A stretch of 64,000 nt of DNA from Eukaryota sp. TZLM1-RC. Its lineage: Eukaryota > Protista > Metamonada: BaSk clade. The notes under the pieces were generated by a model that made no database searches, was not told where the DNA came from, and worked only from the letters and a program-made list of their open reading frames with translations. Position 1 is the stretch's first letter; every line of letters starts with the position of its first letter. Where the stretch lies: contig JAUPSS010000008.1 in assembly GCA_040285825.1 (NCBI GenBank), positions 1,116,001 through 1,180,000 on the forward strand, in the 5' to 3' direction. Below, one piece after another: positions 2,232 through 64,000 of this stretch. A program made the translations under genes and the position numbers.

Positions 2232-2286
2232 CTGAATGGACAAGCGTGTGTGAATTATCCATTTGAATTATGCTCACGTTCCCTAT

Positions 2287-4242
2287 TCATCTCCTCAACA
2301 GAGCATCTGGGCTAATGTATCTTTCCGGCCACAATTCCGCTTTCTTCTTAATTTGAATATTTTTTGCAGCGGAAATATCTCTGTCATATACTATTTGACA
2401 CTCAGTACAAATACGCATCTGCCATGAGCCCGCTTGAATATTCTCGGCCATGCAACAACTTGACATTTTGCTTGTATTAAATTCACTGGTTGACAAGTGC
2501 TTCACGTCCTTTTGATAACACAACCATTTTCTGAAAGCCCTTGCTGATCCATATCGATTGACTTTTCGGCAATGAGAAGGGAAATTAGCAGAACCCACAG
2601 CAAGATAGAGTTTTTCAGGATGCCCAGCCAGCCTTTGAAATTTGTTGAAACTCTCTCTGAACCGTCTCTCTTTTCGTCTGCGGTTATCAAATTTAATTAT
2701 TTTCCATTTCTGGCGATTACTTTCCAAATACACTTTCCTCCTGACCAAATTCCAATGGTTCAAATATTGGTTGAAATTTTGAACGGAATATTGGTTGGGA
2801 GAGTGTTTACTGGGTGAAGGTTTTGTCATGTATCTTCTGCCAGTTGGACAAGGGATAACTCCACATTGATTATCATTTAAAAAGTAACCACATAATCTTG
2901 ATTGGCCAAGATCAACGCCGATAAGGGGGCTTTCAGGTAAAATTTCGACTGGATGTCTACATCTTCGACGGGGCATTTTTTTAGTACCCTTCAACTGTGT
3001 TTCTCTGGTTTTGTTGGCATTAGGGTCACTTTTCATTTCATTTTTTGATCTTCTTTTCTTTTTCGGTGGTTCATCCAGCTCATCTGTGTTTTCTGAGTCA
3101 TTATTTTTACCTTCAAAGGTCAAAAGCAGTTCATTACCATTAGTTTTCAATAAAATTTTGTTAAATCTATTTTTCAAACTTTTTCTGTTGATATTGAATT
3201 TTTGGTAAGGACATTGTTTGAATACTCGTTTCAGACATGTATTTTTGATAAACTTTGTTTTGGAAGATCATCCTTCAATAATTGGAAATTTTTTCACAGA
3301 GTGGAAAATTTGTGAAGGTACCTCAATAAATTTAGAACCTTTATGAGAAGCTAAAGGTATTATTCTAAATTTCTTCCAGCAATGCATATGAGAAAAGAAA
3401 GTGAGTAAGTATTGTGAAATTTTAAGATTGAAGAGAAAAAGCTCACCAATTTCCTTTGATGAAAAAGTGATTTTATCATGTGAGGACAGTAGGGAGGCAG
3501 TGGTAGGAAATCTTTGAAAGAGATTCAAGATAAACTTACATGCATTTAATAAGAAGAATCTTTCTCTTGAATTATTCAAATTGAAATTGATGAGGTATTC
3601 AAGAACAGAATCAACTACTACTTCCTCGGGTTGGGCTAGTGGTTCATCTGGCAAAAGTGAAAGAATATTATTTACAAAGACATTTGTTTTATTCAGGGCT
3701 CTACAATGAGCACGAATAAAGTTTTTTGTCCAGGATTGACAAATTTTGGGTAAACATGTCTTAACGTTGGAGGCCAATTGACGAGCCTGACAAGCAAGGT
3801 AAGGAGAAAGCCCTTTTCTATTGATAAAATTACAGTTCTGGGACTGCAGCCAATCATTGAGGAAAAGATTGAATGAATTTCTGTAAGGCACTAAAGAATT
3901 TTCCCACACAGCAACAAGAGACCTGTCTTGTGGGCATTCAGGAAGAAATCCATTGTAAAAGATATGGAGTAATTGGCGTTGGCCTTTAGATGTGGAAGGC
4001 TTAGGAAAAGAACCAGTCGTGATGATGGTCATAAACAGATACCATACATCCTGTTCCACTAAAGCTCTAGATGCCAACGGAAAATTTAGAAGAAAAGATT
4101 GAAGTAATAAAGAAGCTTCATGACAAATCTCGGTGACCACAGGAAGGTCAGTCCGAATTTGTTGCACCGCTGCAGGGGTCAGCAGCGAGTTAAGTGCACA
4201 AGACCGAGTGAATACACGTGATACAGAGGGGGTGTCTGACAT
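2287..4242 (-). pseudogene. Fanzor: Fanzor (eukaryotic TnpB-like RNA-guided RuvC nuclease) copy 1, 651 codons with one in-frame TGA at 3268-3270
   Basis: ORFs 3268..4263 and 2287..3177 are in the same frame. The TGA is TCA (Ser) in both other copies. RuvC-I GVDLG, LAVGSANF, RuvC-II E in SEFNTSK, SSCC...CTEC Zn ribbon, RuvC-III DRDISAAKNI, NLS PPKKKRR. Confidence 0.9.
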
Positions 4243-4263
4243 GTAGTGAGTAAAAGAGCTCAT

Positions 4264-4409
4264 CTATCAAATTTTACACTTGTCACCCATTTTTGACTTC
4301 TGGTTGCCTATTCTGGGAGGTTTTTAACCCTCAACTTGGTTTTGGGAGGTTTTCACACACTATTCCCACACTTTCCCCTCACTTCATAAACTAGGTTCAT
4401 AAACTAGGT
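4264..4409 (-). promoter_or_regulatory. Conserved Fanzor 5' leader/left-end region
   Basis: Shared with ~59978-60124 and ~31873-31997, and present alone at ~45245-45340. Contains AAAACCTCCCA direct repeats and a 13-bp tandem TCATAAACTAGGT at the homology boundary. Confidence 0.6.
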
Positions 4410-5187
4410 ATCCTTTGCAATAGTTTCTGGAATTTCAACACTATGTAACTCATGAAAGACGCTCTCAGCATCATCAACAGATTAGTCCACGATACTTCTT
4501 TGTCTAAAGAACGTTTCTTTGTTGGTTTTGAGGATAGCTTTGGCGGTGTATTCTTCCTACCTCTTCACGATTTTCTTGCCTTATCTGTACCATCTCACAG
4601 AATTCGCTACATATCTAAAGGAAACTCAATTCTCTGGTCTCGCACAAAATGAATCAACCTTATTGGCTCTGTTGCACCTTCTGTTTCTTTATTCTCATCT
4701 CCAACACCTGGTGTTCTCTCCCGATATTTTCCTCCTCATGCTACTGGTAGAAAGAATTTCCAGTTACCCTTCTTCTCTAACATTGTTTCTTGTAGTGTAG
4801 GTATTCATCATACATTGGCACTCTCTGCTTGTGGTAATTGCTATGGATTTGGTCTGAACAAATCTACCAATTAGGCAACAACTCAATGGAAAATAAATTC
4901 CACAGAAATGATACTATCAATAATGATTGAAGTTTGTTAACAATAATTGAGTTCTGCGAAACAGTGAAAAGATTTCTGTATGTATGTTATCATGAAGCTT
5001 CAGTTGTTTTGATGAACACACAACCATCCTTTTATGAACAGCAATTATAAATCCTCTATTAATGAGAAAAACATTAAAACAGCCAACAAAAGATTCACAT
5101 ATTTACACTGTTGTGACAGCATGTCAATGCTAAAACATTAAAATCAAATAATTAAGCCATATTTATTTCTATGCAATACAAATCCAA

Positions 5188-5482
5188 CTATCCTTGTTGT
5201 TGAGCTTTCATTGACAAGCTTCTTCCTAAAGTTAAAAAATGATCATAAGGTAACAAACCAGCAGCTATAATTTCATCACACAACAATAATTGAGAAGAAA
5301 TAACAGCAGATGAACGAATCATATTTCTTAAAACACAATAGTTGTCCCAAATTCCAAGTTCCTTTGGATCACAGGCTTCTCCAGAAAAGACATCTAAACC
5401 AACAATGCCACCCTCTTCGGCTTCTTCTTGCAAGTTGATAATAGTCTCTTCAGCATCAAGACCAGAGTTTTGAGCAAGTGTT
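5188..5482 (-). pseudogene. CCT6: 3' fragment of chaperonin CCT zeta gene, including a 33-nt intron
   Basis: TLAQNSGLDAEET...GIWDNYCVLR...LLLCDEIIAAG matches the CCT6 C-terminus. GTTTG...TTAACTTTAG intron. No 5' part of the gene. Confidence 0.8.
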
Positions 5483-5494
5483 TATCTCAATAGG

Positions 5495-5588
5495 TCAGAA
5501 ACACAAAAAAGGGATTAGGGAGGGATTAGGGAGGGAAGGGAAAAAAAAAGGGATTTGTACTAGTATTCAACCTAAAATTCAACCACAG
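5495..5588 (+). promoter_or_regulatory. G-rich conserved upstream motif (copy A, before YIF1)
   Basis: TCAGAxACACAAAAAAGGGATTAGG...GGGAAGGG...AGTATTCAACCTAAAATTYAACYACAG, also found at 39887-39963 and 58801-58892. Ends 12 nt before the ATG at 5601. Confidence 0.65.
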
Positions 5589-5600
5589 AATAATCTTATA

Positions 5601-11509: not shown

Positions 11510-14500
11510 ACAGCCACTGTTAAAAATTGACCCAGAACTGACGAAACGAAGATTTTTCCTAGCTTGGTGCCAAACGACGGGAAACAGGTACACCATGGAA
11601 CTTTCAAGGAAACAAGCAGAGAGAGAAGAAGACATTCCATTAGGCCTGTCGACCAGGAGAACTTATTCTAGAGGAGTAATCCCATCTGGTCCAGGTTCTA
11701 AGCGACGCTCGGGAGGCGATACCAAATGAACTACCCAAAACAAATATATACCTGAAATACATGAACAGGATGGTTATAAGTTTTGCACATACTGCAATGT
11801 CACCGAAGGAAATAACCCTATCGGTCACACGGTATTTGAATGTAAAGACCCCGTTGTACCAGGAGTAAGATACCCATGGAACTGAGGTTCATGATTTGTG
11901 AGGCTGACCAGCCTGTGAGAGGTGGCAGTGTAGTTAGGGGCCAAGGTGGCCGTGGTAGACGTGTATCTTGATTTAGAGGTACAGACCGAGGTGGCCATTT
12001 TATAGGACATAAAGGCAGAGGTCGTTATAGACTTATTAATCACATAAACACACAAGAAGACACATCATCAATAACATCCGCTTCTGAGGATGAGTCAGCT
12101 AGTTCGAGCATGACTCCTCACAGTCGGATCGCCCGTTTCAGCAACAGGGTCAGAAATACAGGTAACTTCCCCAATCGGAAACAAATCAATGCAATCAATC
12201 ATAATCAATCAATTGCCGATTTCGGAAACCCGGTGAACAACTCCCCAACAGGACAAAACTAGATTTGTTAGTAAGAAAAAGATCAAAGCCTTGCTGAGAA
12301 TCCCTGGACCAAAATCAGTGAAAGAAGTTCGCTCATTGGTAGGATCCATCAATATATGAGAGATTGGCTTCCTGGTATTTCCGAATTAATAGCTCCAATT
12401 AATGAGTTAATTAAAGGAAAACCTAGAATAATAAAATGGACCAACGAGCATGATGATTATTTTAAACAAATAAAGGATTTAATAATTAATCACATGCCGC
12501 TCGAATTACCAGCTCCGGGCAAGCGCGTATTAATAAGTACTGACGCATCAGATGTAGCAGTAGGAGGTGTTATTTGGCAAGAAATTGAACCATACTCTCC
12601 TGCAGGAATCTCGCTGAATAAAAGGAAAGTGAGACCTTTGTCGTTCTATAGTAGATTATTTACAGAAACACAAAGAAAATGGGCCACTTTACAGAAAGAA
12701 TTATACGCAATACTTCTGATTTTAACTGAAAGTTGTTTAGAAAGCTACCTTTTGACTAGACATCTAACAATTTTCACTGATCACAAAAATATTGCATTCC
12801 TAGCCACAGCCCCAGAGAAAAACAGAATTGTAAAGAGATGGCTGCCGATACTATCTGAATTCGACTTTGATATAGTCCATGAACCAGATGAAGATAACCA
12901 CTGGGCAGATATGCTATCGAGGAATATTGATTTAGATCAAAACGAGGAAACTCCTTCTATATGTAGTATAAATATACCAGATACTTTACTTTCGAATTAC
13001 GAGATACCTCCAATAGACGATGATTCTGATTCGGACTTCGAAGACATCCCATCAATTTCATCCCTAAGTAGACACCAGGACTTACCTATTTTTTCTTCTT
13101 GGTTCTCTAAAATAAACTGAACAGCAAATAGCGAAAAATAACAATGAACCTCTATTTGAGAATGCAATTCTAGATGAAAATACTCAAATTTGGAAAAACA
13201 AAAAAACAAACTTTTAATTCCCAAAAGCCTCAAAAAACAGGCTTTACTATTAATACATGGATTGGTTCAATCAGGCCACCCCAGCAAAAACGACAGTCTA
13301 CATAAACTGTCCAAAAGCGACTTTTTCTGGCTCAATATGAGAAAGGACCTCATATATTATGTCAAAAGATACCCAACTTGTCAAAAAACGGCACCAGTTG
13401 AAAGGATAAAAACACCTTCCACAGGTTCCCTTTGGGCAGACCGTCCTTTTGCTAGATTAAATATCGACACAATTGGACCTCTGAATACTGATAGTGATGG
13501 TAATAAATACTTATTAGTATTTGTAGATTCTTTTACTGGATATTCAATTTTAGTCCCTGTGAAGGAACTCAATGCCTTAGAGTCCGCAGACGCTTTAATT
13601 TGGTACGTTTGCGCAATTTTAGGCATACCTATGTTAATTCATAGTGATAATGGTCCTGAGTTCGCCAATGAGACTTTTAAGATAGTGTGTAATAGATTAG
13701 CTATTGAGATGAGTAACTCAATACCCCACTACTCTGAAAGTAATGGACTTGTAGAGCGTAAACATAGAGACGCTTTACAATGCTTGAGGAAATTATTAAC
13801 AGATTTTAATGATTATGGAAATTGGTCTAATTATGTACCCATATCCCAACTATTAATAAATTCCACTAAAAGCAGAAAGACAGGTTTTACCCCATTCGAA
13901 CTAATGTTCGGATCTTTGATTAGTCCAAGATCGGACCCTGCAAACATATTAGGAAACTTATCAAAATTTGATTCCAATATTCCTTTATTAGACGATATTA
14001 AATTGAAAAATATTCGTCTGCAAGAAAAAAGGAAAAAATCAGAGCGTCATCAATCATTAAATACTCTGACTTCAGTAGACAATACTGATTCGTGTTCTAT
14101 ATATATAGTATTGGTGACTATGTCCTACGGAAAACCAAACAGAATAATAAATTATCTGGATCTTGGAACGAACCACTCTCAGTGATTGAAACTTTTTCCA
14201 AATCCACTTTATTTTTAAAGAATGTTACTACTGGCACAGAATTAAAAGCTGCCAAGAAAGATTGTAAGATCTATAACGCTGAAAATCCGCAGGATATTGA
14301 ATTGCTGAAAGCAGTCGCAGCAGGCGATGCTGAAAAACACGTTATAGAGAAAATCCTCTCAGAATATAGTTCTGACTCAGGTAGTTTCAATTGTTTGGCG
14401 GTGAGACGACTGAAGAGCCTCTCCATTCAGTAAAACATCCAGAAGATTACAAGTTGTTCATTATAGACAAGAGATCTACAAAAGTTGGTAAACGTACTTC

Positions 14501-27770: not shown

Positions 27771-28970
27771 CTATATATTAAAAATTTGCAAACACTTACA
27801 AATGACTTTCAGCTTCAAAAGACCAAGTTCAAGATGGAAACATCAAGAAATGATATTTAGTGGTAATCAGTAAATTGAGTTTTTGAAACTACACACTAAT
27901 CGCAATTGCAAATATTCATGCAGATCAGAGTCTGAAGGAAGAACTCAGACGAAGTAAGTGACAAAGAGAATTGGGAAATTGTAATAAGATTTTGTTTTTA
28001 ATCGGATTAGTTTGACGAAAAGCAGGAAACAAATTTATACGGAAGAAATGTTCTAAAATAATTGTGATCAATGTCACTCAATTACGTAAAAAACGATCTT
28101 ACTCTTCGCTGCAAATGAAAATAATCAGCAACAAAATTGAAATCTCACCATGAATGTTTGATACCGTTTAAAGTGATCAGGACATTGGCAGTTGACGATA
28201 ATTGACATGTGCCCAGTCTTGGACAATCCAAATTTACATTTCAATGAATACAAAGAATGTTGTGAACAAAATGCTACAACTCGACCTTTCTTTATCAGAA
28301 AAGGATATATTTTGTGATTTGAAGCAAAAATGTGATACTTTGTCAAGTCCATGAAATTGCTGGTATTGGTGGAAGACTTTTGAAACATCAAAACAGAGGT
28401 TCATTGATAGAATTTCGCGACTTAAATTGCGAAATTAGCTTTTAGTGAAGAGAATATATAGTCATTAAGAAAATTGAACAAATCCAAGAGCGTAGTTGTT
28501 TATTATGTTTTCCCACAAAGAAAACCCACAACCTCTTGGACATATTCAGATGATGAAATGTACATATTGTTAAAAATTTAATGAAACGAAAACCTAATTT
28601 AAGTCATGAAGCTCAAGCAAACAAAGCAAAACATAGTTTTGATTGTCATATTCCTACACTCATAATAGGCACCAGTGTTCACCTCGAAAGAAGATAATTA
28701 ATTCCAACTTCGGCTTGACGTTGTTATTTACAAACAGCAGCTTATCGATGAAATTATTAAGAACAAAGGAATACATAATCAAAAGTTATCGTAGCAGTTG
28801 ACCCTGAACAGTAGCAAGCTGTATAAAATCATATTCGTTAAGTTTCAAGGAAAACATCAAGAAGAATTTATCTAAAAAAGGCACATCAAGAAGTATCAGA
28901 ACAGATCATCTAAATTGAAAATCGATAGGATTGTAAGCATAAACAAACCGAATAGGACTGGTTTGAAAGA

Positions 28971-31900
28971 GGTAGAGTTTTTCAGGATGTCGAACCAGCC
29001 TTTGAAATTTGTTGACTCTCTCGGAACCGTCTCTCTTTTCGTCTGCGGTTATCAAACTCAATTATTTTCCATTTCTGGCGATTACTTTCCCAGTACACTT
29101 TCCTCCTGACCAAATTGCAATGGTTCAAATATTGGTTGAAAGAGTGTTTACTGGGTGAAGGTTTTGTCATATATATTCTGACAGATGGACCAGGGATAAC
29201 TCCACATTGATTATCATTTAAGAAGTAACTGTTGTTGTTGAACTCAAATTGAATTAGTAGGTTTCTTTGTATTTCGACTGATGACGTGATACTCATTTAT
29301 GAATCAGTTTTATTGATAAACGCAGATTTCTCTCCCCTTAGTGTGTTCATCTACCTAACGGCATCAATAATTATTGGCCCTTCTTATTTCAGATCACTGT
29401 TCCTTCTGTCAACCTCCCGTCTCTTTCTTCCATGAAAGTTGAAAGTGTTCTCTTGTTCCTACAAGAGTGGAAGATCTATTCCTCTGTGACTTCTAAGAAA
29501 GAGCTTGTTCCAGCAAGACTCTTGGTCGATTCTTTTCTGTTAGAGTCCCTATCTCTCCAGAAATCCGACGTCTCTTCCAGTGACGATGTTCTTCTTAGAC
29601 ATCTACAATCTGTCGTATCGTTCGCCACGTACGAAGATTTTAGTCTGGCTATGTCAGAACTGAAGCTTGATGTCCGTATTGGTGACGTCCGAGAACGTAT
29701 GTCCTGTTACCTGCGACGTTTCCTCCAGGTAAAGAGTAGGGCTTCTGGACTGAAGTTACCAGACACAGCTTTTCTGAATCGATTTGCCAGAGGAATTCTT
29801 CCCATAGGTCTTCAACGTTCTCTACTAGCGAGAATTCGAGATGATGTATTCCCAGATCTTAACTCTCTTGTCGAAACCGCTACTGATGAGCTGTTGGACT
29901 GCTCTAGGGTTGCTTCATGGACTCGTGGTTTCAACACCTCAGTGAATGATGTGGAACGTACGGCTGGCACTAAAACGACGTCCTCTTGGCGCTCTCAGGA
30001 TTTAAAAAAATCAATCGTGCTTCAAGTGCCACAAGCCTGGACACATCTCCGGCGATTGTCCAACTAAAATCAAACATGAGGTAAATTATTTGTGTCACAC
30101 AAACGATGCACCAAAGAGTTTAAAAAACACCATATCTTCCCTCTATTGAGCCAGTACTGTATTTGTCCTCAGAAAAGTGGGAAAAAGCAGTGTTGTTGTT
30201 GAACTCAAATTGAATTAGTAGGTTTCTTTGTATTTCGACTGATGACGTGATACTCATTTATGAATCAATTTAATTGATAAACGCAGATTTCTCCCTCCTT
30301 CGTGTGTTCATCTGCCTAACGGCATCATAACCACATAAACTAGATTGGCACAGATCAACGCCGATAAGGGGCTTTTCAGGTAAAATTTCGACTGGATGTT
30401 TACGTCTTCGACGGGGCATTTTTTAAGTGCCCTTTAACTGTATTTCTCTGGTTTTTTGGACCTCAGGGTCACTTTTCATTTCTTTGTTTAATCTTCGTTT
30501 CTTTTTCGGTGGTTCATCCAGCTCATCTGTGTTTTCTGAGTCATTATTTTTATTTTGTGTTTTTACTTTGAAATGTTCATTAAATAAGTTCATTACCATC
30601 AATTTTCAATAAAATCTTTTTAAATCCACTTTTCAATCTTTTTCAGTTGATATTAAATTTTTGGTAAGGTTATTGTTAGAGTATTTGTTTTAGACATGTA
30701 TTTTTGATGAACTTTGTTTTGTAAGATGATCCTTCAATAAGTGGAAATTTTTTCAATGAGTGAAAGACATGTGAAGGAACCTCAACAATTTTAAAACCTT
30801 TATGAGAAGCTAAAGGTATCATTCTAAATTTCCTCCAGCAATGTATATGAGAAAAATGGTGAGTAAGTCTTGTGAAATTTTAAGATTAAAGAGAAAAAGC
30901 TCACCAATTTCCTTTGATGAAAAGGTGATTTTATCATTTGACGACAGTAGAGGAGCAGTGTTAGGAGATCTTTGACACAGATTCAAAATAAAATTACATG
31001 CATTTTATGAAAAGATTCTTACTCTTAAATTATTAAGATGGAAATTGATGTAGGGTTCGAAAAAGAATCAACAATTACTTCTTTGGGCTGCTCACCTTCT
31101 GTCATTACACTAGCTTCTAGAGGTGCTAAGGGTTCATCTGGTATAAGAGAGAAAAGATAATTGGCAAAGACATTCGTTTTATCCAGAGCTCTACAATGAG
31201 CACGAGTGAAGTTTTTTGTCCGGGATTGACAAATTTTAGGTAAACCTGTATTAACAATAACGTTATTGTTGGTTTCCACTGCAGTGACCAAAGGAAAAGC
31301 TTTATCAAATTACAAATACTAAACTTAAACTATCGCCACGTCATCACACGTAATTTGATGTTATCCAACATCTAACAACATCAGATGCTGATTGACGAGC
31401 CAGACAAGCAAGGTAAGGAGAAGTCCTTTTCTGTTAATAAAATTGCATCTCTGTGACTGCAGCCAATCATTGAGGAAAATATTGAATATATTTCTACAGT
31501 AAATTAGAAAATTTTCCAATGTAGAAACAAGAGACATGTCCTGTAGACATTCTGGAAAAAATCCAAAAGATATGTAGTAATTGGCATTGTTGTTTGGAAA
31601 TGGATAAGGTTTGGAGCAAAACCAGTGGTGATGACTGTCAAATAAACATACCATACATCTTGTTCCACCAAAGCTGTAGATGCCAACGGAAAATTCAGAA
31701 GAAAAGATTGAAGCAATAAAGAAGCTTCATGACAAATCTCAGTGACCAAAGGAAGGTCGGCCCGAATTTGTTTCTCTGCTGCAGGGGTCAGCAGCGAGTT
31801 AAGTGCACAAGACCGAGTGAATACATGTGACACAGAAGGATGTCTGACATGTAGTGGAAATAAACAGCTCATCTATCAAATTTTACACTTGTCGCCCCAT

Positions 31901-31997
31901 TCTCGACTTCTGATTGCCTGTTGTGGGAGGTTTTTAACCCTTAACTTGGTTTTGGGAGGTTTTCACTATTCCCCCACTTTTTTTTCATAAAATAGGT
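28971..31997 (-). pseudogene. Fanzor: Fanzor copy 2: diverged, frameshifted, 3'-truncated (lacks RuvC-II/III), interrupted by the gag-only LTR element
   Basis: Collinear DNA similarity with 2603-4409 (VFTRSCALNSLLTPAA, YFLNDNQCGVIP, NRQKWKII). Confidence 0.85.
29230..30327 (+). mobile_element. Gag-only miniature LTR retrotransposon (TRIM/TR-GAG-like), older copy
   Basis: 137-bp LTRs 29230-29366 and 30191-30327 with several mismatches. TSD TAAC. PPT. gag ORF 29432..30067 is frameshifted before the CCHC knuckle. Confidence 0.9.
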
Positions 31998-32637
31998 TTG
32001 AATTTCCTTCATCTACCTTCTTTTCCAAGCTCTACGACTCTTTTTAAGTGTTTTTTACTCAACTTTGATTCATTTTTACCTTTTACCTGCAGTTGGTTTT
32101 CTTGAAACAATTGTTGGACTTGTCCTAAACCCCACCACTCTCTTCCTGTATGTCCATTCCTCTCCATCGTCAGCTCCTTCACAATCCATCTTTTTCTCCT
32201 TTCAAAGGTTTCAATGGTTAATGATCATAATATTTGGGCACTGTTTCAACTTTTCTGAACTTCTTGGTTTGAAGCTCAAGTTTTCATTATGATTATGATG
32301 AATTATGATCGGGAGTTCTTCGTTGAGTTTCTTTTGTGTACCCGATGGTTCTATTTGTACCTCATGTCAACAAACAAAACAGCTAATGTAGATATCATGT
32401 TGTTCTGCTCATTTACGTGTACATTTTTAGTACTCAAAAAATGAATAAACATTTTATTCTATCCAAAAAATCTGATACAAACTCCTCGAACGGACATCTA
32501 TAAGGTCATGCTTCATAGTGGATATGATGACTGTCTTTACACTTAAGCAAGTCGGATGAGACCATTTTATCAAAGTAGGCCGAATCGTTGACTAATCTTC
32601 GTAGAAGAAATGTTGCAGCTAGCGAGATATAATTAAG

Positions 32638-39886: not shown

Positions 39887-39963
39887 TCAGATACACAAAA
39901 AAGGGATTAGGTCGGGAAGGGAAAAGAAAAGGGATTAGTATTCAACCTAAAATTTAACTACAG
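39887..39963 (+). promoter_or_regulatory. G-rich conserved upstream motif (copy B, before CSN6)
   Basis: Same motif as 5495-5588. Ends 39 nt before the ATG at 40003. Confidence 0.65.
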
Positions 39964-53618: not shown

Positions 53619-53868
53619 AGAAACTTTTGAGACCGATCTACAAATACCTCAGTAGCATTTGGTAGATCCACTTAGATACATCAAGTCGCGAGGCTTTGTT
53701 CTGTGAAAGCAGTAGGTCTATTTAAGTGAGGTAGCCCATTGATGAAGATCATGATTGTCTTTGTCAAATGATGCTACATGTCTCTTACAGCCTGTGAGTA
53801 GACATTGAGAAAGTTGAAAACAGGAGTGAATTTCACAGGGGAATGTATGATAAGTGAAATTCACAGTA
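53619..53868 (+). ncRNA. Stand-alone candidate omegaRNA scaffold (ORF-less copy)
   Basis: Near-identical to 63222-63477. Multiple hairpins and a GCCTGTG/ACAGG pseudoknot. Confidence 0.6.
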
Positions 53869-53927: not shown

Positions 53928-56240
53928 ATGCCCCTACCCTTCTTAAGGTCAGAAGAAGTGGTTCCTATTCGTCTTTGGATACATCGTGATGCGTCTCATA
54001 CCACCTTTCGACTTTTAGGACAATATCAGTGTATTCAATTCCGTGACCTTGGATTCAACACTTCTCTTCTACAACGTCAATACGTCAATGAAGTTAAGCT
54101 GTGTGATGACCTACAACGCAGGCTTCTCTTTGTCAAAAACCAGTTATCAGAGAACAATGTAACCTTGCCCTCTGAACCTCCTTCACCATCCATATCAATA
54201 CCTCTCCATCTTATTGACCAAGAACTTCTTGATTTTGAATCTCGTCTTGCTCAACTCCTGGAACACGACTCTGCCCTTCATGACCAACTCTCCTTGTATA
54301 AAGACCATCACCTTGTTGTCTCCTCAATAGGACACCTTTTACAATCTCAGCATAGTTCTGCCTCAATTGAGCTCTCCACTGTCCTTGACACTGCCCGTGA
54401 ACCTCTCCTCTCCTCTCCTTCTCTGTCTGGGTTTGCTTCCACCACCTTCTCTTCATTGGGTCTCCTAGCTGGGGTTTTTGCCACTAATAAAACCAGAGAT
54501 ATTCTTAAATCTTTATGGAGAGCCACTAGAGGCAATCATTATTTAAAACTTGTCACTCTTGCTGAGAATAAAACTTGTTTTGTTGGGTTTTATTCTGGTG
54601 AAGTTGTGCGTTTGAAGATGACAAAGATTTTGGAGGCGTTTGGTGTGGAAATTTTTCATTTGCCGCACTCGGATGACGTGCGAAGGGATCAGATGAATGA
54701 CCTAAAGATCAAAATTCAAGACTTGGAAAGAATTCTTCACCAGTCAAGTGTTCATAAAGGAATGATCCTCAATGAGGCGAGTTCTAAAGTTTGTGTCTGG
54801 AGCTACGTAATTAACAGAGAAAAAGCCATCTACCACGCCCTCAACCTCGCAAACTACGACACTTCTACTGACTTTGTTGTTGCGGAAGGCTGGGCCGTGA
54901 AGACTTCCCTCGCTACAATCACTAATGTTCTTAGCGAAGGTAGTTCATGTTCAGGAATTTCAGTTCCAGCATCATTTATAGAAGAACTTGACTCAATTAA
55001 TGAAAACCCTCCAACCGTTTTTAATACTGGGAAAGTATTTGACATTTTCCAAGCTATCACTAATTCTTATGGTCTACCTAAATATGGAGAGGTTAACCCC
55101 GCTCTCTTCTCGCTTGTTACATTTCCTTTTCTTTTTGCGATGATGTTTGGTGATGTTGGCCACGGAATATTACTTTGTTTAATAGCTCTTTGGTTTGTTC
55201 ATAAAGAAAAGGTAAACGAAAAGAAGCAACTAGGTGATATTGCTCAATACTTACACTCTGGAAGATACATTTTGCTCTTCATGGGTGTACTGAGTATTTT
55301 CACTGGTTTTATTTACAATGATTTCTTTTCCTTATCAATGCATTTATTTAAGTCTGGCTATGACTGCAGTTCTGGTCGTTGCATTCAAACAGGCGTTTAT
55401 GCTTTCGGTTTTGATTATCATTGGAAGGAAGCCAGTAATGAATTGTTATTTTATAATTCTTTTAAGATGAAATTTTCAATTGTTTTAGGAGTGTTGCAAA
55501 TGGTTCTCGGCTTGTTTCTTTCTCTTCTCAACCATTTGCATTTCAAAAACACTATTAATGTTATTGGAAGGTTCGTTCCGGAATTTCTAATGCTTACCTC
55601 TATATTTGGTTATCTAGTCTTTACAATGTACCTCAAATGGTTCTCGACCTGGGATAACACCTTCCACACCCCTTCCTTAGTCCATGTCTTGATAAACATG
55701 TTTTTGTCTCCAAAAGAATTAACCCCAGATGAATACCAGTTATTCAGAGGACAATTACGTGTTCAACAATTGCTATTAGGCTTATTCATAGCGTCTATAT
55801 TCTGGTTATTGCTAGCTAAACCTCTTTTTTACCTAAAGAAAAGCAGTAAAACTTATCTTTCTGTCTCTGATTCTGAAACTCCTGACCCTGTTTCCATTGC
55901 TGATGTTGTTGTTGGTCAGGTTATCCACACAATTGAATTTGTTCTTGGTTGTATTAGTAACACTGCCAGTTATCTCCGTATTTGGGCTCTTTCTCTGTCT
56001 CATGCTGCATTGTCTGCAGTGTTTTTCGATATGTTGCTAGTTAAAAGTATTCAAAGTGGTAACGTTATAGTTGTTTGTCTTGGCTTTGCAACTTGGACTG
56101 CAGCCACTCTTGGAGTTTTGGTTATCATGGAAGCTCTTTCTGCATTTCTACATGCACTAAGACTGCATTGGGTAGAGTTTCAGAATAAGTTTTTTGATGG
56201 TACAGGAACACCATTTAAGCCATTTTCAACCAATCTGTAA
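53928..56240 (+). CDS. VPH1: V-type proton ATPase V0 subunit a
   Basis: FLRSEE, QFRDL, EGW, YGEVNP, FAMMFGDVGHG, NTASYLRIWALSLSH (essential Arg), LHALRLHWVEF. Confidence 0.97.
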   Translation: MPLPFLRSEEVVPIRLWIHRDASHTTFRLLGQYQCIQFRDLGFNTSLLQRQYVNEVKLCDDLQRRLLFVKNQLSENNVTLPSEPPSPSISIPLHLIDQELLDFESRLAQLLEHDSALHDQLSLYKDHHLVVSSIGHLLQSQHSSASIELSTVLDTAREPLLSSPSLSGFASTTFSSLGLLAGVFATNKTRDILKSLWRATRGNHYLKLVTLAENKTCFVGFYSGEVVRLKMTKILEAFGVEIFHLPHSDDVRRDQMNDLKIKIQDLERILHQSSVHKGMILNEASSKVCVWSYVINREKAIYHALNLANYDTSTDFVVAEGWAVKTSLATITNVLSEGSSCSGISVPASFIEELDSINENPPTVFNTGKVFDIFQAITNSYGLPKYGEVNPALFSLVTFPFLFAMMFGDVGHGILLCLIALWFVHKEKVNEKKQLGDIAQYLHSGRYILLFMGVLSIFTGFIYNDFFSLSMHLFKSGYDCSSGRCIQTGVYAFGFDYHWKEASNELLFYNSFKMKFSIVLGVLQMVLGLFLSLLNHLHFKNTINVIGRFVPEFLMLTSIFGYLVFTMYLKWFSTWDNTFHTPSLVHVLINMFLSPKELTPDEYQLFRGQLRVQQLLLGLFIASIFWLLLAKPLFYLKKSSKTYLSVSDSETPDPVSIADVVVGQVIHTIEFVLGCISNTASYLRIWALSLSHAALSAVFFDMLLVKSIQSGNVIVVCLGFATWTAATLGVLVIMEALSAFLHALRLHWVEFQNKFFDGTGTPFKPFSTNL

Positions 56241-58782: not shown

Positions 58783-58800
58783 TTGAATGTGAAAGTATTA

Positions 58801-58892
58801 CTGTGGTTGAATTTTAGGTTGAATACCAGTACAAATCCCTTTATTTCCCTTCCCTCCCTAATCCCTCCCTAATCCCTTTTTTGTGTTTCTGA
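58801..58892 (-). promoter_or_regulatory. G-rich conserved upstream motif (copy C)
   Basis: Same motif as 5495-5588. Ends 18 nt before the ATG at 58782. Confidence 0.65.
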
Positions 58893-58904
58893 CCTATTGA
58901 GATA

Positions 58905-59200
58905 AACACTTGCTCAAAACTCTGGTCTTGATGCTGAAGAGACTATTATCAACTTGCAAGAAGAAGCCGAAGAGGGTGGCATTGTTGGTTTAGATGTCTT
59001 TTCTGGAGAAGCCTGTGATCCAAAGGAACTTGGAATTTGGGACAACTATTGTGATTTAAGAAATATGATTCGTTCATCTGCTGTGATTTCTTCTCAATTA
59101 TTGTTGTGTGATGAAATTATAGCTGCTGGTTTGTTACCTTATGATCATTCTGTTAACTTTAGGAAGAAGCTTGTCAATGAAAGCTCAACAACAAGGATAG
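58905..59200 (+). pseudogene. CCT6: CCT6 3' fragment with 34-nt intron
   Basis: As 5188-5482. Splicing restores ...IIAAGRSLSMKAQQQG*. Confidence 0.8.
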
Positions 59201-60146
59201 TTGGATTTGTATTGCATAGAAATAAATATGGCTTAATTATTTGATTTTAATGTTTTAGCATTGACATGCTGTCACAACAGTGTAAATATGTGAATCTTTT
59301 GTTGGCTGTTTTAATGTTTTTCTCATTAATAGAGGATTTATAATTGCTGTTCATAAAAGGATGGTTGTGTGTTCATCAAAACAACTGAAGCTTCATGATA
59401 ACATACATACAGAAATCTTTTCACTGTTTCGCAGAACTCAATTATTGTTAACAAACTTCAATCATTATTGATAGTATCATTTCTGTGGAATTTATTTTCC
59501 ATTGAGTTGTTGCCTAATTGGTAGATTTGTTCAGACCAAATCCATAGCAATTACCACAAGCAGAGAGTGCCAATGTATGATGAATACCTACACTACAAGA
59601 AACAATGTTAGAGAAGAAGGGTAACTGGAAATTCTTTCTACCAGTAGCATGAGGAGGAAAATATCGGGAGAGAACACCAGGTGTTGGAGATGAGAATAAA
59701 GAAACAGAAGGTGCAACAGAGCCAATAAGGTTGATTCATTTTGTGCGAGACCAGAGAATTGAGTTTCCTTTAGATATGTAGCGAATTCTGTGAGATGGTA
59801 CAGATAAGGCAAGAAAATCGTGAAGAGGTAGGAAGAATACACCGCCAAAGCTATCCTCAAAACCAACAAAGAAACGTTCTTTAGACAAAGAAGTATCGTG
59901 GACTAATCTGTTGATGATGCTGAGAGCGTCTTTCATGAGTTACATAGTGTTGAAATTCCAGAAACTATTGCAAAGGATACCTAGTTTATGAACCTAGTTT
60001 ATGAAGTGAGGGGAAAGTGTGGGAATAGTGTGTGAAAACCTCCCAAAACCAAGTTGAGGGTTAAAAACCTCCCAGAATAGGCAACCAGAAGTCGAAAATG
60101 GGTGACAAGTGTAAAATTTGATAGATGAGCTCTTTATTCTCACTAC

Positions 60147-63100
60147 ATGTCAGACACCCACTCTGTGTCACGTGTATTCACTCGGTCTTGTGCACTTAAC
60201 TCGCTGCTGACCCCTGCAGCGGTGCAACAAATTCGGACTGACCTTCCTGTGGTCACCGAGATTTGTCATGAAGCTTCTTTATTACTTCAATCTTTTCTTC
60301 TAAATTTTCCGTTGGCATCTAGAGCTTTAGTGGAACAGGATGTATGGTATCTGTTTATGACCATCATCACCACTGGTTATTTTCCTAAGCCTTCCACATC
60401 TAAAGGCCAATGCCAATTACTCCATATCTTTTACAATGGATTTCTTCCTGAATGCCCACAAGACAGGTCTCTTGTTGCTGTGTGGGAAAATTCTTTAGTG
60501 CCTTACAGAAATTCATTCAATCTTTTCCTCAATGATTGGCTGCGGTCCCAGAACTGTAATTTTATCAATAGAAAAGGGCTTTCTCCTTACCTTGCTTGTC
60601 GGGCTCGTCAATTGGCCTCCAACGTTAAGACATGTTTACCCAAAATTTGTCAATCCTGGACAAAAAACTTTATTCGTGTTCATTGTAGAGCCCTGAATAA
60701 AACAAATGTCTTTGCAAATAATATTCTTTCACTTTTGCCAGATGAACCACTAGCCCAACCCGAGGAAGTAGTAGTTGATTCTGTTCTTGAATACTGTTGT
60801 TGTTGAACTCATATTGAATTAGTAGGTTTCTTTGTATTTCGACTGATGACGTGATACTCATTTATGAATCAGTTTTATTAATAAACTTAGATTTCTTTCT
60901 CCATCGTGTGTTCATCTGCCTAACGGCATCAATAATTATTATCCTTTCTTATTTCAGATGACGTTCCCTCTGTCAACCTCCCGTCTCTTTCTTCCATGAA
61001 AGTTGAAAGTGTTCTCTTGTTCCTACAAGAGTGTAAGATCTATTCTTCTGTGACTTCTAAGAAAGAGCTTGTTCCAGCAAGACTCTTGGTCGATTCTTTT
61101 CTGTTAGAGTCCCTATCGCTCCAGAAATCCGACGTCTCTTCCAGTGACGATGTTCTTCTTAGACATCTACAATCTGTCGTATCGTTCGCCACGTACGAAG
61201 ATTTTAGTCTGGCTATGTCAGAACTGAAGCTTAATGTCCGTATTGGTGACGTCCGAGAACGTATGTCCTGTTACCTGCGACGTTTCCTCCAGGTAAAGAG
61301 TAGAGCTTCCGGACTGAAGTTACCAGACACAGCTTTTCTGAACCGATTTGCCAGAGGAATTCTTCCCGTAGGCCTTCAACGTTCTCTACTAGCGAGAATT
61401 CGAGATGATGTATTCCCAGATCTTCACTCTCTTATCGAAACCACTACTGATGAGCTGTTGGACTGCTCTAGGGTTGCTTCATGGACTCGTGGTTTCAAAA
61501 CCTCAGTGAATGATGTGGAACGTACGGCTGGCACTAAAACGAGGTCCTCTTGGCGCTCTCAGGATTTAAAAAATCAATCGTGCTTCAAGTGCCACAAGCC
61601 TGGATACATCTCCCGCGATTGTCCAACTAAAATCAAACATGAGGTAAATTATGTGTGTCACACAAACGATGCACCAAAGAGTTTAACAAACCCCATATCT
61701 TCCCTCTATTGAGCCAGTACTGTATTTGTCCTCAGAAAAGTGGGAAAAAGTAGTGTTGTTGTTGAACTCATATTGAATTAGTAGGTTTCTTTGTATTTCG
61801 ACTGATGACGTGATACTCATTTATGAATCAGTTTTATTAATAAACTTAGATTTCTTTCTCCATCGTGTGTTCATCTGCCTAACGGCATCAATACCTCATC
61901 AATTTCAATTTGAATAATTCAAGAGAAGGATTCTTCTTATTAAATGCATGTAAGTTTATCTTGAATCTCTTTCAAAGATTTCCTACCACTGCCTCCCTAC
62001 TGTCCTCACATGATAAAATCACTTTTTCATCAAAGGAAATTAGTGAGCTTTTTCTCTTCAATCTTAAAATTTCACAATACTTACTCACTTTCTTTTCTCA
62101 TATGCATTGCTGGAAGAAATTTAGAATAATACCTTTAGCTTCTCATAAAGGTTCTAAATTTATTGAGGTACCTTCACAAATTTTCCACTCTGTGAAAAAA
62201 TTTCCAATTATTGAAGGATCATCTTCCAAAACAAAGTTTATCAAAAATACATGTCTGAAACGAGTATTCAAACAATGTCCTTACCAAAAATTTAATATCA
62301 ACAGAAAAAGTTTGAAAAATAGATTTAACAAAATTTTATTGAAAACTAATGGTAATGAACTGCTTTTGACCTTTGAAGGTAAAAAAAATGACTCAGAAAA
62401 CACAGATGAGCTGGATGAACCACCGAAAAAGAAAAGAAGATCAAAAAATGAAATGAAAAGTGACCCTAATGCCAACAAAACCAGAGAAACACAGTTGAAG
62501 GGTACTAAAAAAATGCCCCGTCGAAGACGTAGACATCCAGTCGAAATTTTACCTGAAAGCCCCCTTATCGGCGTTGATCTTGGCCAATCAAGATTATGTG
62601 GTTACTTTTTAAATGATAATCAATGTGGAGTTATCCCTTGTCCAACTGGCAGAAGATACATGACAAAACCTTCACCCAGTAAACACTCTCCCAACCAATA
62701 TTCCGTTCAAAATTTCAACCAATATTTGAACCATTGGAATTTGGTCAGGAGGAAAGTGTATTTGGAAAGTAATCGCCAGAAATGGAAAATAATTAAATTT
62801 GATAACCGCAGACGAAAAGAGAGACGGTTCAGAGAGAGTTTCAACAAATTTCAAAGGTTGCCTGGACATCCTGAAAAACTCTACCTTGCTGTGGGTTCTG
62901 CTAATTTCCCTTCTCATTGCCGAAAAGTCAATCGATATGGATCAGCAAGGGCTTTCAGAAAATGGTTGTGTTATCAAAAGGACGTGAAGCACTTGTCAAC
63001 CAGTGAATTTAATACAAGCAAAATGTCAAGTTGTTGCATGGCCGAGAATATTCAAGCAGGCTCATGGCAGATGCGTATTTGTACTGAGTGTCAAATAGTA

Positions 63101-63202
63101 TATGACAGAGATATTTCCGCTGCAAAAAATATTCAAATTAAGAAAAAAGCGGAATTGTGGCCGGAACGATACATTTGCCCAGATGCTCTGCTGAGGAGAT
63201 GA
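60147..63202 (+). pseudogene. Fanzor: Fanzor copy 3, open throughout except for the LTR insertion at 60795-61890
   Basis: 60147-60794 plus 61895-63202 gives 1956 nt in one frame (651 aa). All RuvC and Zn-ribbon motifs are present. Confidence 0.92.
60795..61890 (+). mobile_element. Gag-only miniature LTR retrotransposon, very young copy
   Basis: 137-bp LTRs 60795-60931 and 61754-61890 look identical. TSD ATAC. PPT. gag ORF 60996..61712 with CFKCHKPGYISRDC knuckle. Confidence 0.93.
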
Positions 63203-63221
63203 ATAGGGAACGTGAGCATAC

Positions 63222-63477
63222 AGAAACTAAAACTTTTGAGACCGATCTACAAATGCCTTAGTAGCATTTGGTAGATCCACTTAGATACATCAAGTCGCGA
63301 GGCTTTGTTCTGTGAAAGCAGTAGGTGTATTTAAGTGAGGTAGCCCATTGATGAAGATCATGATTGTCTTTGTCAAATGATGCTACATGTCTCTTACAGC
63401 CTGTGAGTAGACATTGAGAAAGTTGAAAACAGGAGTGAATTTCACAGGGGAATGCATGATAAGTGAAATTCACAGTA
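63222..63477 (+). ncRNA. Candidate omegaRNA scaffold directly downstream of Fanzor copy 3
   Basis: Starts ~20 nt after the stop. At least five hairpins with G-U pairs on the + strand, a GCGA tetraloop, a CCTGT/ACAGG pseudoknot and a terminal GTGAATTTCAC/GTGAAATTCAC stem. Repeated at 53619. Confidence 0.65.
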
Positions 63478-64000
63478 TAACAACACTTTTTTCCGAAATC
63501 TGAAAGGTTCTGCTAGGGAACATAACTTATGGTTGTAATAATGACTACAGAGTACAGAAGCAATGGCTTTGTATGTGAACAGCATTGAAAAGAAAGTTCT
63601 ACTTCAGTTGTAAAGCGTAAATATATTATCATTGTGTTTTAAATAATAGTTTATGGCTATTTTGTGGCAAAAAATTTATTATTTTGGTTGCTAAAAACGA
63701 AAAATATCTGATATTGGTTAAAAAAAGGCAAGACCTCAACCCTTACATAATCCAGCACTTAACCCACTTAGCTAAAACCATCTTTTGTGATCAAAACGAG
63801 CTCATTGTGGATTAAAAGCTGAAAATCTGCTTCATCACCACTGATAAACAAAAAAGTTGTAAATTCACTTGGTTAGATCAAAGAATTATCAGTAAAAATT
63901 CAACGTGTGACTACTGAAGGGAACTAGTAGGGAGTAATCTAAAACTCGAGAGGAAAGTCACATTGCTGTAGGGAAGAAGAAACAGAGGGTGGTGAAGTGG

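Follow-up and report, generated by a model that had tools for sequence, protein, structure and literature searches.

Does the folded RNA predicted directly behind a Fanzor gene in a metamonad genome serve as the guide scaffold of the encoded nuclease, or does the conserved DNA at this transposon end have another function? Guide RNAs of Fanzor and TnpB derive from the transposon right end. The stretch of DNA analyzed here, referred to as the window, is 64,000 nucleotides long and comes from Skoliomonas litria TZLM1-RC, a free-living anaerobic soda-lake metamonad (PMC11603281). An original prediction had placed a candidate omegaRNA scaffold plus guide behind the third of the Fanzor copies in the window. 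Our analysis leads to a similar reading, namely that the conserved structured block of ~245 nt at 63233-63475(+) is probably the omegaRNA scaffold of a Fanzor1-like RNA-guided nuclease, to judge from its sequence and that of its relatives. Its carrier is a non-autonomous transposon with terminal inverted repeats (TIRs) and a 2-bp (TA) target-site duplication, located at 58801-63475(+).

The element of copy 3 begins directly after a TA dinucleotide (58799-58800), which sits just before the motif CTGTGG, with the left TIR CTGTGGTTGAATTT (58801-58814(+)), whose start motif is common to five S. litria copies. The Fanzor gene inside it is split into two parts. The first part (60147-60794(+), residues 1-216) starts with MSDTHSVSR, as does the intact 651-aa paralogue P0041, and is 98-99% identical to copy 1 and to the copy at locus L009. 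The second part (61895-63202(+), residues 217-651) contains the RuvC-I aspartate, the relocated RuvC-II glutamate, the zinc-ribbon TNB domain, and the RuvC-III aspartate. The two are separated by a 1.1-kb LTR element (60795-61890(+)) with the target-site duplication ATAC, a pair of ~140-bp LTRs (60792-60934 and 61751-61893) of the form TG...CA, and a gag-like ORF with a CCHC knuckle. Copy 1 and the copies at L004, L009, and L012 are continuous from 60794 to 61890, and without the insert the Fanzor parts of copy 3 sum to exactly 651 codons, equal to the intact paralogue.

The two further Fanzor copies in the window are both in minus orientation. Copy 1 (2269-5592), at 99% identity, is broken in frame; copy 2 (28970-31998), at ~84% identity, is 3'-truncated and contains the 1.1-kb LTR element as well, at another position. 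This non-autonomous element is thus found in two Fanzor copies at different positions (60795-61890 and 29228-30339). None of the window copies has an intact Fanzor ORF. The 90%-identity cluster of the protein comprises at least 82 S. litria members, marking the Fanzor element as a multi-copy transposable element.

No transposase ORF was found between the element ends (58801-63475), which enclose only the Fanzor gene and a TCP-1 fragment, and no DDE transposase was found in the element or in the other loci read. The fragment, a C-terminal piece of a TCP-1/CCT chaperonin (Pfam PF00118, E = 7e-9) at 58954-59241, upstream of the Fanzor ORF, was apparently captured from a host gene. The DNA spanning it is common to copies 1 and 3 and to L004 and L009, and L012 aligns around it only up to 58978 and from 59082.

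The ORF that immediately precedes the RNA block (61910-63202(+)) contains a Cas12f1-like TNB domain (Pfam PF07282) and represents the C-terminal part of the 651-aa protein. In an alignment of relatives, the RuvC triad D444/E587/D622 is invariant. The canonical RuvC-II position is occupied by a glycine (G550), with the glutamate E587 located 37 residues downstream within the motif SEFNTSK; a rearranged site with a relocated RuvC-II glutamate has been described for Fanzors (PMC10530073). A basic KKKRR stretch, a candidate nuclear localization signal, is also visible in the protein.

A protein profile built from ten relatives has SpuFz1 (8GKH) as its best match (E = 2.5e-11), ahead of Cas12m, TranC, and ISDra2 TnpB, whose structures 8EXA and 8H1J are weak profile matches. 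The profile was needed to reach SpuFz1 because a single-sequence search matches only the TNB domain: phmmer of P0041 against the PDB gave just a weak TNB match, to Cas12m. Identity to SpuFz1 is ~12%, and SpuFz1 was found only by profile or by fold. In the fold comparison with Foldseek, SpuFz, PpFz, and GtFz structures occupy ranks 1-7 (E = 2.5e-9 to 6e-7, SpuFz1 best), with low TM-scores of 0.3-0.37 obtained from an AlphaFold model with a pLDDT of 67.7; Cas12f, Fanzor2, and TnpB follow at lower ranks. By profile and by modeled fold, the protein is Fanzor1-like and very divergent.

The family is narrow, with 32 matches at E <= 0.001 among 1.84 billion representatives. The sources of 16 matches all lie in three Skoliomonas genomes, except for three environmental proteins (the P0077 and P0078 clusters). 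Further Fanzor-like families, ~24-29% identical, are present in Skoliomonas, represented by P0071, P0073 (TZLM3-RCL), and P0075 (GEM-RC). Several of these are multi-copy and full-length, as exemplified by eight 592-aa members that cluster with P0071. The genome paper makes no mention of Fanzor or TnpB, and no link between Fanzor and Metamonada was found in the literature searched.

Directly downstream of the stop codon, the 30 nt before position 63233 (63203-63232(+)) form a non-conserved spacer that cannot be aligned between S. litria and the sister species Skoliomonas sp. GEM-RC. The RNA block that follows has an RNAalifold consensus of 76 pairs, arranged in nine helices and six hairpin arms on the plus strand, and every stem of the original prediction was located at its position when checked on the sequence. 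Helix H1 (63238-42/63389-93) closes a three-branch junction formed by H2-3, H4 (with H5 and H6), and H7. H2-3 (63244-56/63264-77) is the stem GATCTAC-AAATGC/GCATTT-G-GTAGATC at 63244-63277. H4 pairs CACTTAGATACATC (63278-63291) with GGTGTATTTAAGTG (63324-63337) and encloses both H5 (63292-96/63301-05), which reads AAGTC-GCGA-GGCTT (63292-63305) with a GCGA loop, and the further hairpin H6 (63310-13/63318-21), which reads CTGT-GAAA-GCAG (63310-63321) with a GAAA loop in S. litria. H7 corresponds to the GTAGC...GCTAC stem at 63340-63386. On the 3' side of H1 are H8 (63400-04/63429-33) and the terminal hairpin H9, in which GTGAATTTCAC (63435-63445) pairs with GTGAAATTCAC (63463-63473).

H8 had originally been proposed as a pseudoknot. 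The pairing itself, between CCTGT (63400-63404) and ACAGG (63429-63433), is present, but both of its arms lie between H1 and H9, outside every other helix, and H8 is therefore a nested hairpin; the pseudoknot reading is ruled out. The loop of H8 measures 24 nt in S. litria vs 6 nt in GEM-RC, a deletion of ~20 nt across which the stem has been kept.

The fold is strongly asymmetric between the two strands. The sense strand of 63222-63500(+) has a minimum free energy of -84.7 kcal/mol (z = -5.08), a value that none of 200 dinucleotide shuffles equaled (-61.3 +/- 4.6), as compared with -67.3 kcal/mol (z = -3.09) for the antisense strand. The consensus of seven copies folds at -72.2 forward vs -50.7 for the reverse complement, and the GEM-RC copy alone at -84.8 vs -55.8. 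G-U pairs make up 56 of the 528 paired cells. The placement of the RNA on the Fanzor sense strand, for which G-U pairs had been the original argument, is borne out by these G-U counts and by the difference in consensus energy.

Comparison of S. litria with GEM-RC identifies the RNA block as the most conserved part of the element between the two species, with 79% identity, as opposed to 62.5% in the Fanzor ORF and 43% in the upstream non-coding DNA. On an alignment of nine copies, 95.8% of paired cells can pair, a fraction that falls to 36-43% with the partners slid, and the observed covariation score was reached by none of 500 shuffles. Between the two species consensuses, 58 pairs are unchanged; among the 17 changed pairs, 15 are still paired, by 5 double changes and 10 one-sided changes, all via G-U, and 2 are broken. 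Substitutions affect 15% of paired columns vs 36% of unpaired columns, and the indels of 9, 18, 20, and 4 nt all fall in loops. H6 is capped by a GNRA loop in each species, GAAA in S. litria and GUAA in GEM-RC. H8 and most of H9 are invariant. Because only two lineages are available, each compensatory change counts as a single event. A scan of metagenomes for a third lineage gave no hits with the right-end DNA pattern, and one with the protein alignment yielded 339 pattern hits, of which none was confirmed. The fold, the loops, the covariation, and the strand asymmetry together point to selection on an RNA transcribed from the Fanzor sense strand.

Selection of this kind acts at the level of RNA and would also fit a block with no guiding role. 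It could alternatively be a structured 3' untranslated region or non-coding RNA that serves the Fanzor gene by affecting mRNA or protein stability or by controlling expression. The length of the block, far above that of known Fz1 scaffolds (PMC11423790), and its absence from the relatives in Skoliomonas sp. TZLM3-RCL (see below) would also fit such a role. However, the block ends exactly at the transposon boundary, with a terminal hairpin adjoining variable flank as in the layout of an omegaRNA, and the protein retains an intact catalytic triad. Hence we regard a purely non-guiding RNA as unlikely and the guide scaffold as the preferred reading.

The block travels with the Fanzor in nearly all copies examined. 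It lies 3' of the Fanzor ORF and in the same orientation in 7 of 8 S. litria copies (window copy 3 and the copies at L001, L004, L005, L006, L009, and L012, those outside the window having been collected through their annotated proteins). A homologous block occupies the same position in both GEM-RC copies (L002 and L008), whose proteins are 58-59% identical, giving nine ORF-linked blocks from two species in the same register. The exception is window copy 1, whose homology to copy 3 ends at 63221 and which therefore has no RNA block. Conversely, a second copy of the block at 53624-53866(+), 98% identical to 63230-63477, stands in the window without a Fanzor ORF.

Seen in isolation, these two cases would suit a repeat or non-coding RNA gene of independent origin that happens to adjoin the Fanzor ORF. 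This reading was rejected once five further genomic copies showed ORF and block joined, and we consider it extremely improbable given the constant register across both species. Joined to the ORF-less copy is a gypsy-type retroelement, shortened relative to its twin at 12946, so that this copy of the block is a remnant. Rfam, moreover, gave no match over the window at the gathering score and none within 63100-63560 even at E <= 10; the block is thus not a known housekeeping RNA, the identity that would have spoken against the original prediction, nor a member of a known RNA family.

Around the first positions of the RNA block (63221-63239), three rearrangements that arose independently lie close together: the loss of homology in copy 1 at 63221, the start of the ORF-less copy at 63230, after a T-rich run, and a T-rich insertion of 58 nt at 63239 in L006. 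Past the ORF-less copy, an intronless 770-aa ORF (53928-56240) begins after 60 nt; judged by eye, it is a candidate V-ATPase subunit a.

An 84-position covariance model (R1) of the 3' part of the block and an nhmmer profile of the whole block recovered only the ten known copies. In the TZLM3-RCL loci, neither search found a homologue of the block (best candidate L011 4535-4590, E = 0.19). The likeness between TZLM3-RCL copies ends ~40 nt past the stop codon, so that any guide scaffold in these relatives must overlap the ORF. A search of phage DNA with ORF and RNA as the query gave no match.

The position at which the block ends is fixed by the transposon itself. Every complete copy has the right end GAAATTCACAG, followed by 2 bp and then by unrelated DNA. 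The 2 bp are TA, except in L012, where both flanks read TT; this shows that they stem from duplication of the target site and do not belong to the element. The right TIR GTGAAATTCACAG (63463-63475(+)) doubles as the 3' arm of H9, and complete copies diverge past its end; L009, which has an intact ORF, is missing the last three bases of the right end. Left ends were located in five S. litria copies (window positions 58801, 5588(-), and 39963(-), and loci L009 and L012). The S. litria left end reads TA followed by CTGTGGTTGAATTT; among the five copies, the start motif is CTGTGG in three copies, CTGTAG at window position 39963, and CAGTGG in L009. In GEM-RC, TA is followed by CTGTGAATTTC, which matches the inverted right end GAAATTCACAG exactly.

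The scaffold had been predicted to stop at the CACAG motif (63475), and this position coincides with the transposon end, exactly where homology between copies stops. The sequence beyond CACAG and TA differs in each copy. The first two bases of the guide originally proposed, TA, prove to be the target-site duplication, so that the predicted guide segment (63476-63495(+)) would comprise the duplicated TA (63476-77) and then copy-specific flank. By analogy with known systems, a TIR end with variable flank after the block is what one would expect where an omegaRNA scaffold takes its guide from the flanking DNA. The bases preceding the element are TAT+TA in three and TTA+TT in two of the five S. 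litria left flanks, and TGA+TA in the single GEM-RC copy; in a genome of 62% A+T, no target-adjacent motif could be fixed from these six left flanks.

Since the last 13 nt of the block are a terminal inverted repeat, and H9 pairs this repeat with an internal copy of itself, the conserved region might instead function as DNA, its right-end subterminal sequences or hairpins being recognised by a transposase. The same termini are found on other nearby elements (L004 5223 onward; L009 7324), as would suit this explanation. A role in DNA recognition, however, leaves much of the conservation pattern unaccounted for: at the left end only ~11-14 bp are conserved, against an upstream identity of 43%; G-U pairs are preserved through substitutions on one strand only; and GNRA loops and compensatory changes occur up to 240 nt away from the end. 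We therefore judge a DNA-level function to be very unlikely, below even the non-guiding RNA considered above, and continue with the omegaRNA scaffold as the preferred reading.

These nearby termini are of the same kind as those of the Fanzor element. At L004:5221-5245, TA comes after the right end and precedes CTGTGTATTCAAATC, which resembles a left end, and at L009:7290-7340 a lone terminus ending in GTGAAATTCACAG and followed by TA lies ~2 kb downstream. Several non-autonomous elements may thus be moved by one transposase family.

The scaffold reading as originally put forward is supported by the presence of the block behind the ORF in nine copies, by its top conservation, by the maintenance of its helices through substitutions, and by the coincidence of its end with the transposon boundary. 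If it is correct, a transcript in the Fanzor sense orientation would span the 3' untranslated region, cross the right end, and reach into the flank; following RNA processing, the ~245-nt folded part would bind the Fanzor protein, and the ~15-20 nt after CACAG, beginning with the duplicated TA, would serve as the guide. The complex would then be expected to cut the same flank where it lacks the element, at an empty or excised site, beside a short AT-rich motif, and repair from the filled copy would retain or spread the element. Because the ORF of copy 3 is split by the LTR insert, its RNA could work only with protein from an intact copy, for example the one at L009. The conserved 245-nt block may exceed the mature RNA in length, with part of it lying outside, as published Fz1 omegaRNAs measure 75-150 nt (PMC11423790).

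In Skoliomonas sp. TZLM3-RCL, an XPG/FEN1-type nuclease precedes, or is fused to, the related Fanzor (L003:1923-5980; L010:3001-6331; L011:1185-4149). P0031 contains XPG_N and XPG_I domains, and over its last 63 residues it matches the N terminus of the S. litria Fanzor at 44% identity; P0033 (1323 aa) unites XPG_N, XPG_I, and TNB in one protein. A second TZLM3-RCL family, 42% diverged, has the same XPG-Fanzor gene order. No work combining "Fanzor" and "XPG" was found in the literature searched. We tentatively consider, while holding it to be rather doubtful, that skoliomonad Fanzors constitute a separate Fanzor1-like lineage with a larger, multi-domain guide scaffold and an ancestral link or fusion to an XPG/FEN1-type flap nuclease, as represented by P0033. 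The larger scaffold of such a lineage may comprise the three-branch junction with GNRA loops and the two guide-proximal hairpins, beyond any characterized Fz1. Were both traits functional, some members would combine RNA-guided targeting with a second nuclease activity, and others would couple it to an enlarged RNA.

To our knowledge, Fanzors are the only eukaryotic RNA-guided DNA nucleases, and a defined guide RNA is available for only a handful of them. The Skoliomonas locus very probably represents a previously undescribed, otherwise conventional, family of RNA-guided nuclease transposons, and adds a new and very divergent Fanzor1-like family from the deep-branching Metamonada. It does not alter current understanding of the architecture of such systems. 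With the intact 651-aa protein P0041, a right end defined to the base, and a scaffold structure supported by cross-species covariation, the system lends itself readily to direct tests and to reprogramming. Both the long scaffold and the XPG fusion in a sister species could inform the trade-offs between protein and RNA modules in the TnpB/Fanzor/Cas12 lineage.

The closest comparison is with Fanzor1 omegaRNAs. Known Fanzors have a conserved, folded non-coding region between the end of the ORF and the right end (PMC10530073, PMC10432273). As with SpuFz1, GtFz1, and PpFz1 (PMC10432273, PMC11423790), the Skoliomonas locus has a predicted folded RNA, in sense orientation, at the 3' end of a transposon-borne eukaryotic gene of Fanzor1 type, a scaffold that stops at the right end with the guide predicted in the flank, and a protein with the same fold and a relocated RuvC-II glutamate. 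The Fz1 omegaRNAs measured so far, however, are 75-150 nt long, with SL1 separated from the guide by one to three stem-loops (PMC11423790), whereas the block here is ~245 nt, lies wholly downstream of the stop codon, and is more branched, with six hairpin arms, nine helices, and a three-branch junction. The host, a metamonad, also differs.

In its extent, the block resembles the fRNA of the mimivirus Fanzor2 ApmFz2, for which the ~200 nt between the end of the ORF and the right inverted repeat are conserved non-coding sequence that is predicted to fold stably (PMC10530073). ApmFz2, however, is a Fanzor2 in an IS607-like element with a TnpA serine recombinase, whereas the Skoliomonas protein is Fanzor1-like and is carried by an element with TIRs and a TA duplication but no transposase. 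The omegaRNA of ISDra2 TnpB (IS200/IS605) likewise originates from the right end, has its guide at the 3' side, and acts with a RuvC/TNB partner; it is prokaryotic, overlaps the end of the ORF, and contains a pseudoknot; the Skoliomonas helix originally compared with it is a nested hairpin. The transposon itself, with its short TIRs and 2-bp TA target-site duplication, is similar to Tc1/mariner-type elements, and Fanzor1c has been reported with Mariner/Tc1 (PMC10530073). Tc1/mariner elements encode a DDE/D transposase characteristic of the family; because the Skoliomonas element has no transposase ORF, we describe it as a non-autonomous TIR transposon and do not file it as a member of Tc1/mariner.
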